DNA of 63,601 nucleotides, filler included, from Octopus bimaculoides (lineage: Eukaryota): NCBI RefSeq assembly GCF_001194135.2. It is 6 parts of 6 records of this genome, joined end to end, with 100 filler letters (N's around TTAATTAATTAA, not from the genome) between each part and the next. Parts side by side here need not be neighbours in the genome. Positions count along the whole stretch, not along the records: positions 35,837 to 43,991 come from NC_068998.1; 5 more parts are not named here. One strand, 5' to 3'. The notes under the pieces are model-generated. The model was not told the DNA's origin, did no database searches, and was given only the letters and a program-made list of their open reading frames with translations. Both the position numbers and the translations under genes were made by a program. This document shows positions 35,872 to 43,920 of this stretch, piece after piece. The first letter of the stretch is position 1. The number at the start of each line of letters is the position of its first letter.

Positions 35872-36072
35872 CATACATATCTATTCATATTTATACATGC
35901 ATATATACATATGTGTGTGTGTCTGTGTTTGTGTATATGTGTGTATGCGTGTGTTTGTACGCAAAGAAATATATAAGAAGAAAGTGGTGTTTAATTAGAT
36001 TAAATCTTATACAGAGATTACGTTGGAGCATTTGTATCTCGGAAGATAAACATTTGTATCTTAAATACTTAC

Positions 36073-36106
36073 CAACAGTAAGACAGATACGTAGAATATA
36101 TCGCAT
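36073..36106 (-). CDS. Paralog A first coding exon, signal-peptide start MRYILRICLTV(G)
   Basis: tccactATG..gtt g|GTAAGT phase-1 donor; homologous to 43713..43677 with a shared upstream module; downstream exons not resolved (linker gap at about 35.74-35.84 kb). Confidence 0.6.
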
Positions 36107-36993
36107 AGTGGATTTTTTTCTCGTATAATGTTATTCTACTTCTCCCCGTGTCTTATAAACCTAACCTCGAAACAATGTAACTGCTGTTGGTCTTCAGCCC
36201 AACTGTGGTTATATTTGAAACGTACTGTATTATATGATTTTTTTTTTTCTGTTGCATATTTAATAGTGTGGATGACAACGAAAACGGTTTTGCTGATTTA
36301 TTTGAGAATTTTATCTGTTGAAATACGTATGTGTATGTGTGTGTGTGTGTCTTTGTCTGTATGCATGTGCGTGAGCCTGCGTGGTGTGTGTGTGCGTGTG
36401 GGTAGGTGTTTGTGTTTGTGCGCGTGGTGTGTAAACCCCCAACTGAGTCCCCAACATGCCTGCAGCCCAATGACTGAAACGATTAAAAGAATAAAAGTAG
36501 CGAATGAACGAAAAGAATGAGAAATAATATAATGAATGCAAATGAAGAAAATGTATTCAGGAAATTGATATCTGTATATCATACAAAATGTATATACATC
36601 GTTAGAAGACATGAAGCTTTATATATATTGAAGCAAAACGAATATAGACGCACCAGTAGCTCATTGAGACGTTGGACAATGAGTGACAGTCAGGTAGACA
36701 TTTTAATATCTTTTCTTTAAATGTAGAATTGTAGAGTATTCTCTCGTATATGTGTGCTTATCTGTTTACATATACAAACCATATCTATCTTACCTTCCTC
36801 CCTTCTGGTTTTGAGAAGCCTAATTTCTCAAGATTGGTATTTAGGCAGTGTATGTATGTATGTATGTATGTATGTATGTACGTGTGTTATGTGAGCATGT
36901 GCGTGTCTTCACATGTTAGGTAGAATATAATTCCTATGCACAGTTTCATTCAGAACGGTTATGAAGATGAATATTTATATCTTTATCTACTGA

Positions 36994-37260
36994 CAAACAA
37001 TGAGAAGACGATAACAGAGAAAATATTCCGTCGTGGATATTCCTTTTAAATCAACGTCTGCTCATGAAATATTCCTGTATTTGTTTTCCTGTCTTGTAAA
37101 TTTCGAAATGACGTAACGGCTGTTTATTATAACTCTGACTATATTTATCTTTACTATATATAGTGTTATATATTTTATTGCGACATATTTAATAGTTACT
37201 TGTTTGACAGTGAAAAAAACGTTTTAGTTATATATTTGAAATGTTAAAATACGAAACATA
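36994..37260 (-). pseudogene. Paralog B promoter plus exon 1 remnant (ATG changed to ACG, donor GTCAGT)
   Basis: atccacgACGgaatattttctc..attgttt|gtcagt; upstream catatttaatag module at 37184-37195. Confidence 0.55.
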
Positions 37261-37399
37261 CATACACAGACATGCAGGAAGTAAATAGACATCTTTAATT
37301 GTCAAAATGTCTGATCTAAGCGTCTTAATATGTTTTCAGCTGTGTAGAATTTACAATGTAATTATTATGTTTCGTTCCAGGTGCCATTATATTAAATAT

Positions 37400-37811
37400 T
37401 TACGAAGAATAACCATGCTACGCACCAAAAATTCAGCAGAACTGTCAAAATTACCGAAAATCTTCAAATTCCTCTTGCTGCTGTTAATAGAATTATAGTG
37501 CAATTCAAAAGCCAAGGAAGAGAATCAAAGAATCAACAGATTCTCGTCCCGGCCGATCTCGGTCTCCAGAAAGGAAGCCTCACTGTTTGAAGAGAATTGT
37601 GGTAAACGAACCAACGTTCGAAGGCTTCTGACATTGGAAAACAGCTAGAAGTTAGTCAAAGAACGTCTGTTACATATATGCATAAGCTTGGGTATTATGG
37701 ACGACCAGCTAGAAGAAAACCTCTCCTTCAACCAATCAATATCATATATTTAGGATTTGTGCAAATGCAAAAATAATTTTTTTTTTAGTAGTGGAAGATC
37801 ACTATTGACAT
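37400..37811 (+). mobile_element. Tc1-like transposase N-terminal fragment
   Basis: SRPGRSRSPERK..LKRIV..ASDIGKQLEVSQRT..MHKLGYYGRPARRKPLL. Confidence 0.8.
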
Positions 37812-40934: not shown

Positions 40935-43442
40935 CTGCAAAATTGTTATATTCGTTGATAATGGTAATTCTCGATTTAAATCACTTCAGTACTTAGTATT
41001 TACCTTGTTAATCCATAAATATATCATTTCGGAATACATACTTGCAATAAATCCTTACATCTAAATACACTAAAACAGATTCTGTATACATCATCGCCCA
41101 TTTAAATATTGCTTGTGGAATGAATAGGAAAAAATCTCGTTAGGGCTATCCGAATTTATATAAAAATAACATTTAGAATTTAGTTCACTGATTCACGATT
41201 TAAAAAATATGAAGAAATAAGAAGTATCTTACTAGTACAAATATCAAAAGCCAAGTATTCGTACACAAGCCCCTTATAACACCATTGTGGGCCTTTTCTT
41301 CTGGCACATTCTTTATACATTCGTAATCGTCTGGAGGACAAACATACATTGTACTTTGTAAATATGCTGAACATAAATGGTTATATTTTTTCTACTTTTG
41401 TGTTAAGAAGAAATTATAAGGAAGTTAATAAAATATGTAACATTTCAAAATGTATGATATTATTTATTTTATTTTTTTAATGCTAATCTTTAGATGGTTT
41501 TATTTGTTTTTCTTGACGAATGTCTCATCAATTATTCGAGTGTTTTAATTCGTCTAAGAAATATTAGTCTTTCACTCTTAAGGATCCAACTGTTTAAGAA
41601 ATAAATTAATATCTTCATTATTTTCAACAAGATGTATTACAATAATAACATTGAAAATAAAACAATATCTACCGACAGAAACGTTGATTGTCATTATCAA
41701 ACTTCAATCGGGGATACTTTATCCAGGCCTCTGGACAATATTCTTCACTCAGACAATACTTCATTCCAGTAAGCTCTGCAAGTTTAAAATGTACGTTTAA
41801 TATTTATACAAGGTAGAATTTATTTTGCAAAATACACTATAAATTAAAATACACTATAAATTAAAACCTGTAATCGTGTTTTAAAATCGCAACATCTTTC
41901 GGAAACTCTCAAATATGATTGTTTGTTGCCAGAGAATTTACTTTCCCACACTTTATGATTTTGTGTGTGTATAGGACGTTTTCTGCGAAAATTGTTTCTG
42001 TTAAGACAAATACACCAACCAGCTTAACAAAAGGTTGTATGGTTGGTATAAATCTCCACCAGGCAATCATAAGATGACATACGAAGTCGAAGTCTATCAC
42101 CAGACGATTGTTTGTATTTCAAAGTTAATGTGGCATGTTTTCATTGGGTGATATACAAGAAATGACAGAAATAATATATATATAGTATTCGATAAACAAC
42201 AACACACTTTCAAACAGGTAGTGAAGATCGTTATTATTTACTTACTCTTTGAGTTTACGCCCCAGAGTGTCTGCAGCCCAACGACTGAAAGAGAACAATG
42301 GAAGAAATGAATGAAAAAATGAATGACCTTAATAACGTATCTTGCTGGCACTCCATTGGTGACGACGGCGAGGTTTCTAGTTGATCTGAACAGTGGTTGA
42401 GCACTCTACAGAAATGCGTATCCATAACGGAGTTCTCAAGGTGGTTCAACATGAAACTCAATGTGAGTAGGTTGGCTCTTTGAATAACAAGTACCACTCA
42501 TTTATGCCAGATGAGTGGATTGGAGTACGTGAAATAGTGTGTTGTTCAAGGATATAACGCACCGGCAAGAATCGAAATCACTACCTTTTGATCAGGAACT
42601 GAGTACCGTAACAACTAAGCCAAGCGCCTTCGCATCGTACACTAACACTACAACAACAAAATATAAGATAGAGAAGAAACGAAAACAACTTAAACGGCAG
42701 CAATATTTCTATTGTGAGCAACACTATCAACAACAACAACGACAATGACAACATTAGCAGCAGCAGCAGCAGCAATAACAACAATACATTCACAGCCGTT
42801 GCTGCGGATGCCTCAGCGCTATTTAGAATGGACATACTGCAGAAAGACATACGTCTAGCCCAAGCAGTGAAATTGATAAGTCTGGAAAAAGCGCGAGCGG
42901 GCATTGATATTTCACTCGATTTGTTCGACTAAAGGCGCGGTGCTCCAGCGTGGCCCCTGTCAAATGACTAAATCACGTAAAAGAAATACAAGAAAATACG
43001 TTTATCATCTAATTATAATTAGGATTTATGGACATGCAAAAGTAATTCTTTCTTGTAGTAGTGGAAGACCGAAGTTGACATAAGTGTTGAAACCGAGTCA
43101 TTCCTAAATAAAATTCGTGCTCCGATACATAAGAAACTGTGTAGAATAATTTCGCTGATATTGCGTAATGTCGTCCCGCTTCTAAGAACTTGGTGAATGT
43201 TTCTGAAACAAAACTAGATTAAATCAGAAACTTTTAGAGCCAGACGGAATTCTGGAATATTTTTGTTTCTAAATCTATGGTTATATAAGTTTGGAATATT
43301 TGTGCTTATCTACACACACACGGAGACGCATACACAAACACACACATACACACACTCAAGGTGAGTGAGAAACTACTGCGATCTTTTTCTGAGTAACTCA
43401 TGTTCGTACAGTTATATATCTACACAAAATGAAGAAAGACCA

Positions 43443-43485
<43 letters not shown>

Positions 43486-43488
43486 GAA

Positions 43489-43570
<82 letters not shown>

Positions 43571-43713
43571 AGAAAGATAGAAAGAAAAAAGAAAGAGAGA
43601 ACGTGTGTGTGTGTTAGATTAACTGGTATCCTCTGAATATTATGAAGATGAAGAGCGTTTACGTTTAAGTACTTACCAACAATGACAAGACAAATATGTA
43701 GAAAAAAATTCAT
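40840..43713 (-). CDS. Predicted 4-exon gene (43713-43677, 41775-41673, 41366-41233, 40934-40840): 122-aa secreted Cys-rich protein with hydrophobic C-tail
   Basis: CCACCATG start, GT-AG introns (1901, 306, 298 nt), phases 1/2/1 chain without a stop: MNFFLHICLVIVELTGMKYCLSEEYCPEAWIKYPRLKFDNDNQRFCRIFTKYNVCLSSRRLRMYKECARRKGPQWCYKGLVYEYLAFDICTRMQTQNVQIISNNLQNVLVHLFVAKLLNMSN*. No Ns in the span. No expression or homology evidence available. Confidence 0.62.
41233..41366 (-). CDS. Exon 3 (134 nt, phase 2 to 1)
   Basis: ttatgttcAG|cata...tgtacta|GTaaga; within ORF 41180..41374. Confidence 0.62.
41673..41775 (-). CDS. Exon 2 (103 nt, phase 1 to 2)
   Basis: aaacttgcAG|agctt...ttctgtcg|GTagat; open frame LTGMKYCLSEEYCPEAWIKYPRLKFDNDNQRFC. 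Confidence 0.62.
43022..43260 (+). mobile_element. Tc1-associated remnant in intron 1, homologous to 37752-37811
   Basis: ggatttatggacatgcaaaagtaattctttcttgtagtagtggaagacc..ttgacata vs ggatttgtgcaaatgcaaaaataa..tagtagtggaagatc..ttgacata. Confidence 0.6.
43677..43713 (-). CDS. Exon 1 (MNFFLHICLVIV + g)
   Basis: Strong Kozak context, donor GTAAGT at 43676. Confidence 0.68.
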
Positions 43714-43920
43714 GGTGGATTTTCCTGTTAAGTCAACGACAACCAACAGCTCAATCGTTTTAAAAACTCCGTGTGATATACATTAAGCTATGATGTAACA
43801 GATGTTTATTCTCATTCCAGCAATATTTTTATTTGCTATATATCTTGTTATATGATTTTATTGTGACATATTTAATGGCTTGAATGACAATGCACATGGT
43901 GTTAGTGTTATATCTAAAAT
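43714..43920 (-). promoter_or_regulatory. Conserved upstream module of the paralog family with TATA-like ATTAAATATG
   Basis: catatttaat(a/g)g at 43867-43878, 36255-36266 and 37184-37195 (variant at 38622), about 150-165 nt upstream of each start. Confidence 0.4.

Follow-up and report, generated by a model that had tools for sequence, protein, structure and literature searches.

A recurring 5' module at an Octopus bimaculoides locus and its probable place in a clustered, taxon-restricted gene family

The beta-defensins of mammals, the preprodermaseptins of frog skin and the toxin superfamilies of cone snails are clustered secreted peptides whose genes turn over by birth and death; their signal region is conserved and their mature peptide changes fast. 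Here we describe a locus of Octopus bimaculoides that resembles these systems in some respects and departs from them in others. It lies in a window of 63,601 nt (the whole stretch of DNA analysed, made of six joined parts), of which positions 35837-43991, an AT-rich piece of animal DNA with many microsatellites, are 100% identical to chromosome CM046618.1 of assembly GCA_001194135.2. A first-pass annotation, made from the sequence alone, had proposed that a promoter plus a signal-peptide exon recurs here in four diverged copies, as a tandem family in birth and death. We conclude that these four modules, called A to D, are very probably the 5' ends of a clustered, taxon-restricted gene family, with D and A linked to genes and B and C surviving as stubs.

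Like the established families, this one forms a tandem cluster with pseudogenised members in which only the cysteine frame is fixed, and its 5' or signal part is at least as well conserved as its mature exons (91% versus 77-81% identity in the youngest pair, the paralogues F and G introduced below). It is unlike them in having a signal peptide that is split over two exons and a mature domain that is predicted to be helical, and Pfam, the PDB and Foldseek gave no relationship to them in sequence or fold.

Self-BLASTN, MAFFT and nhmmer agree that a homologous module of ~300-330 nt occurs four times, always on the minus strand, as had been reported for a module of about 300 bp:

~36030-36310, minus strand: module A, with the coding part of exon 1 at 36106-36073 (MRYILRICLTV plus 1 nt) and the donor GTAAGT at 36072-36067
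36914-37250, minus strand: module B, a solo 5' stub with ACG for ATG at 37031, a pseudo-exon at 37031-36995 and the donor GTCAGT
38363-38671, minus strand: module C, a solo 5' stub with ATG at 38484, an open reading frame that stops at 38440 after 14 codons, and the canonical donor GT lost
43603-43921, minus strand: module D, comprising ~200 nt of upstream region, the 5' untranslated region (UTR), exon 1 and ~75 nt of intron 1 of LOC128249871, as placed by BLASTN, nhmmer and alignments

Pairwise self-BLASTN alignments between the modules cover 288-517 nt at 59-69% identity (E 4e-15 to 6e-35), and mean column identity in the MAFFT alignment of all four is 71%. The start, peptide and donor read earlier for each copy proved exact throughout. 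In A and D an ATG (36106 and 43713) opens MRYILRICLTV and MNFFLHICLVIV respectively, each followed by G/GTAAGT; B begins with ACG and has no in-frame upstream ATG; and C reads MKYFLRFCLLNVQK and then a stop, with AA where the canonical donor GT is expected. An upstream motif had been described as common to every copy, and this holds for three of them: A, B and D carry CATATTTAAT unchanged (3 matches against 0.14 expected, a number reached in 0 of 100 shuffles), while C carries CACAATTAAT, a variant differing at two bases.

The identity of module D is given by the gene that it begins. A protein search with our initial guess at the exons returned a single match, the uncharacterised 101 aa product of O. 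bimaculoides LOC128249871, and five GT-AG exons inside the window splice exactly to XP_052830374.1:

43677-43713, minus strand: gene D exon 1, coding part, MNFFLHICLVIV plus 1 nt, phase 1, donor GTAAGT
42246-42284, minus strand: gene D exon 2, 39 nt, phase 1 to 1, VVGLQTLWGVNSK
41673-41775, minus strand: gene D exon 3, KLTGMKYCLSEEYCPEAWIKYPRLKFDNDNQRFCR, phase 1 to 2
41233-41330, minus strand: gene D exon 4, RLRMYKECARRKGPQWCYKGLVYEYLAFDICT, phase 2 to 1
40752-40780, minus strand: gene D exon 5, NEDRQRHRG plus stop

Module D is thus the upstream region and first coding exon of the LOC128249871 gene model. A reading of exon 4 in the CPPDDYECIKNVPEEK frame, with a weak acceptor, was rejected, as the NCBI product uses the other frame. 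Intron 2 of this gene also holds a perfect 17-nt tandem duplication at 41829-41866 (AAAATACACTATAAATT, 2.2 copies).

The only relatives of D found among proteins, by HMMER against 1.84 billion representatives and by a profile search of 5.8 billion proteins, are LOC128249908 (E) and LOC128249863 (F), and neither search returned a relative from outside octopus. Three marginal ENA matches (E ~1e-4) were dropped as repeat-driven and without names; one of the marginal ENA matches (638 aa, E 1e-4) is a repeat protein with ten cysteine-rich units that include DCPPAWLEV, a faint likeness to the YCPEAWKKYP of this family. E and F are also on CM046618.1, ~80-100 kb from D and on the other strand, and the whole cluster spans ~125 kb, at 51.00-51.13 Mb. 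An nhmmer profile made from A to D alone, with no further copy in the model, recovered three more modules on this chromosome (E 4e-60, 6e-41 and 1e-39), which lie directly 5' of E, of F and of a third, unannotated paralogue, G. This brings the known copies to seven; in the ~53 kb of sequence read, each of them lies inside the cluster and is oriented as the genes are. Beside G lies a further unannotated member, so that two features are added:

L003 17531-21190: paralogue G, with a module directly upstream
L003 23520-24800, minus strand: paralogue H, exons 3 and 4 only, inverted beside G

The gene structure is shared as well as the module. Across the family the first exon closes in phase 1, exon 3 begins in phase 1 and ends in phase 2, and exon 4 begins in phase 2 and ends in phase 1; exon 2 is 39 nt long in D, E, F and G. 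The cysteine frame C-x5-C-x(15-18)-C in exon 3 and C-x8-C-x13-C in exon 4 occurs in six paralogues, namely D to H and the body that follows module A. None of the six varies at the six cysteines or at the CP.A..(K/R)Y core of CPEAWKKYP. Each of D, E, F and G has a module directly upstream that provides an ATG and a phase-1 GTAAGT donor, and so, across a gap, does the body behind A. The three annotated loci are each an 'uncharacterized protein' at NCBI; module D is exon 1 of LOC128249871, and the other two share its module, phases and cysteine frame. Unlike these, A, its gene body, B, C, G and H match no protein in the database searched, although the A body, G and H carry open, canonically spliced exons 3 and 4. 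At least three paralogues (the A body, G and H) are therefore absent from public annotation. The description of a tandemly duplicated gene family in birth and death thus stands, with D inside an NCBI gene model and three more modules 5' of paralogues.

NCBI places the starts of E and F at upstream ATGs (MIGCRCIGKFT- in E and MEKGKRTFHDRTVIEKEKST- in F; L002 10001-10069 and 18796-18889) for which the other copies show no conservation, the conserved ATG being 33 nt downstream in E and 60 nt downstream in F. The annotated N-termini of these two proteins may be over-extended.

Module A has its own partner. A gap of 2.7 kb follows it, beyond which, outside the piece, are paralogous exons 3 and 4 (L001 21926-22028 and 22803-22900; tblastn E 5e-6 and 1e-4). 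Their splice sites are canonical and they keep the phases of the family. Since these exons lie beyond the gap, A is best read as the first exon of its own neighbouring paralogue, which fits the alternative raised earlier that A might be the first exon of another gene. A word-indexed protein search gave no candidate database protein for the predicted paralogue.

Modules B and C are different. The 1.45 kb between C and B and the 0.93 kb between B and A contain no exon 3- or 4-like sequence, so B and C are coding-dead, truncated 5' stubs and not full-length pseudogenes. They had been called two pseudogenised members of the family; they are indeed dead, with the defects named above, but as 5' stubs 0.9-1.5 kb apart without a gene body. 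Both retain something beyond the module:

36449-36487, minus strand: probable relic of B's exon 2, VIGLQACWGLSWG, ~545 nt after the ACG
37340-37812, plus strand: part of a Tc1/mariner-like transposase, lying in C's intron 1 and extending into an assembly gap; a weak match to Pfam HTH_Tnp_Tc3_2 (E 9e-4, below the curated cutoff)
43014-43082, plus strand: stretch of D's intron 1 homologous to the final 69 nt of C before the gap, 81% identical over 69 nt

The relic in B keeps its acceptor, tttcag, but has lost its donor and runs into a SINE-like (short interspersed nuclear element), GT-rich tract at 36320-36440. C has ~560 nt upstream of the ATG in common with E, its homology to the E upstream region reaching ~39048. 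As the 43014-43082 homologue stands at the same relative position in intron 1, C and D share more than the module, and for the same reason the Tc1-like insertion would be older than the duplication that separated C from D.

Modules A, B and C all face one way over 2.4 kb, no gene body separates them and one follows them, and they might instead be alternative promoters and first exons that are all spliced to the body beyond A, in the manner of the protocadherin and UGT1A loci. In those arrays each first exon has its own start and an in-phase donor, and here B and C fail: B lacks an ATG and has GTCAGT as its donor, whereas C, with no in-phase donor, runs on to a stop codon, the sole nearby GT (AAAA/GTAATT) giving phase 2, which is out of frame. 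C moreover shares intron-1 sequence with D, including the transposon fragment, which makes it a truncated gene copy and not a purpose-built first exon. We consider an array of this kind unlikely.

It is less likely still, and to our minds very improbable, that the extra copies are assembly artefacts, in the form of misplaced contigs or uncollapsed haplotypes. The assembly is admittedly split into 713,915 contigs (PMC10700109), and the contig that carries C (38357-40020) has a gap on either side:

37813-38356, no strand: assembly gap within C's intron 1, its flanks colinear with D's intron 1
40021-40250, no strand: assembly gap in an (AT)n array, either between genes or on the 3' side of gene D

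The copies differ, however, by 24-41%, far above allelic variation. B and A are on a single unbroken contig (35837-37812), so their adjacency is not a scaffolding artefact. Around the first gap, self-BLASTN pairs 38363 with 43603 and 37812 with 43082, which gives a span of 551 nt in C against 521 nt in D, as expected; the corresponding stretch of D contains (AT)n and (GA)n microsatellites, which would account for the gap in C. The second gap is ~730 nt 3' of D's stop codon and breaks no exon. The runs of N in the public chromosome assembly are those of the piece, neither gap can be filled from it, and no reading frame spans either one.

The least probable account makes the module a dispersed repeat (all or part of a non-autonomous transposon) that lies near these genes by chance. 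The region is indeed dense in SINE and Tc1-like fragments, but all seven copies found in the ~53 kb read are in one cluster and in gene orientation, five of the seven are directly 5' of a family gene body, three supply an NCBI gene model with its start codon and donor, no terminal inverted repeats were found flanking the modules, and the divergence of the modules parallels that of the adjoining introns and exons, with F and G the closest pair in all three. The evidence supports the module as the 5' end of the family genes, that is, an upstream region and first coding exon, and not as a transposon.

The module had been described as a promoter plus a signal-peptide exon. As the 5' end of a gene family this description holds, but exon 1 alone is not a signal-peptide exon: it codes for just 11-12 residues, and the hydrophobic core is finished by the separate 39-nt exon 2 (V-V-G-L-Q-T-x-W). 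With exon 2 included, the maximum 12-residue Kyte-Doolittle value is 3.15-3.45 in D, E and G and 1.76 in F, and the uncharged N-terminal run is 14-24 residues in all four. On these features the proteins of the family are probably secreted.

Exon 2 appears to have a history of its own. Its pyrimidine tract, AG acceptor and first ~25 nt align well with the antisense tail of two unrelated SINE copies (window ~42900-43010 and L001 725-835). Besides 42246-42284 (minus strand) in the window, the exon is found at L003 2231-2305, 10840-10955 and 19746-19847, so that it is present in D, E, F and G; a relic follows B, and the counterparts of A and C would fall in assembly gaps. Four members (D, E, F and G) have this 39-nt exon, so exonisation of a SINE tail probably took place before the family expanded. 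The case is like the Alu-type exonisation of antisense SINE tails in that tract, acceptor and exon start match the antisense tail. Typical Alu exons are minor alternative exons, whereas exon 2 of this family is in the annotated protein of three NCBI models, is predicted in G and encodes the signal core. Octopus transcripts frequently carry embedded SINE fragments (PMC9115989). Three SINE-type repeats were recognised in this part of the window:

39735-39935, minus strand: SINE-type dispersed repeat; nine or more relatives, 62-86% identical, occur in the ~53 kb of octopus sequence read
42335-42660: SINE-type dispersed repeat, similar to L001 22260-22641
42780-43005: SINE-type dispersed repeat

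ARAGORN and Rfam gave no match to these three repeats, and tRNA and Rfam scans of the window piece as a whole were likewise without a match.

As to promoter function, the modules share upstream the blocks ATTAAATATG, an E-box-like AACAGCTGTTAC and a TATA-like ATATAAAAG, the last ~65-75 nt before the ATG, followed by a short 5' UTR, an exon 1 of 11-12 codons ending in phase 1, GTAAGT and ~70 nt of intron. From the position of these blocks, the module may well have promoter activity.

Several observations weigh against the account given so far, in its promoter part and in the standing of A. The NCBI start of F is only ~5 nt past the TATA-like motif, which misfits that motif as a TATA box, and the non-conserved upstream NCBI starts of E and F are in general a poor fit to it. 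Module identity is 62-76% (91% between F and G), against 60-70% (86-88% between F and G) for the introns that can be aligned, and nothing shows selection on the module. The E-box of A is altered to CAGCAG, and if A is joined straight to exon 3, without an exon 2, the longest uncharged run is 5 residues, a poor signal sequence; either an exon 2 is hidden in the 2.7-kb gap or A is impaired, and its status as an intact member is uncertain. Whole genes, introns included, align at 60-70%. An argument for promoter constraint from the conservation of the module was accordingly rejected: the introns align at similar levels, and that conservation is not evidence of constraint.

The mature exons behave differently, being less conserved than the module in every pair. 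In the youngest pair, F and G (L003 13158-13705 versus 20709-21186), exons 3 and 4 are 77-81% identical and the flanking introns 86-88%; by our own two-proportion estimate ~41 of 192 nt differ in the exons against ~109 of 838 in the introns (p ~0.003). Nei-Gojobori ratios of non-synonymous to synonymous change (dN/dS) lie between 0.18 and 1.3, and in the older pairs dS is saturated. For F and G the difference between exons and introns is no more than suggestive of diversifying selection on the mature exons.

What the mature peptide might look like can be approached by modelling. An AlphaFold run on an alignment of the four database sequences gave an all-helical model with a predicted local distance difference test score (pLDDT) of 75, and our working view of the product is a putative secreted, disulfide-stabilised helical peptide. 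Gene D has no Pfam match in either exon-4 frame, and PDB searches found no significant match by sequence profile (best E 0.12) or by fold with Foldseek (best E 3.5). We found no Pfam family or paper for LOC128249871, LOC128249908 or LOC128249863, and no literature that names the LOC or XP identifiers of the family.

Taken together, the locus is very probably explained by a family of five-exon genes encoding ~100-aa proteins, in which a signal peptide divided between two exons precedes a mature domain of ~70 aa, predicted to be helical and with six cysteines. The D module would drive LOC128249871, and the A module would belong to the next, unannotated paralogue downstream. B and C would have been left by partial duplication or deletion in the array, each keeping exon 1 and part of intron 1 (B probably exon 2 as well), although for these stubs the mode of origin is inferred. 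The family evolves by tandem and inverted duplication accompanied by loss, the 5' end and the cysteine frame persisting while the rest of the mature-peptide sequence diverges at least as fast as the introns. A fuller version, which we offer only tentatively and think doubtful as a whole, is of a family confined to octopus. Its secreted peptides would be helical, with six cysteines, and of the sort that act as effectors in venom, mucus or immunity or as pheromones; it would have taken its signal core from an antisense SINE tail before it expanded; and its mature exons would be under diversifying selection, changing ~1.6 times faster than the flanking introns in the youngest pair.

In summary, birth-and-death evolution of clustered, secreted, cysteine-rich peptides is already well known; the feature is in that sense ordinary, and it has no bearing on a long-standing open question, but the family itself is uncharacterised. 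The locus provides a small and clean case of the growth and decay of a lineage-restricted secreted-peptide family in a cephalopod genome, one that combines whole-gene duplicates, inverted members, 5'-only stubs and a coding exon that is probably derived from a SINE.

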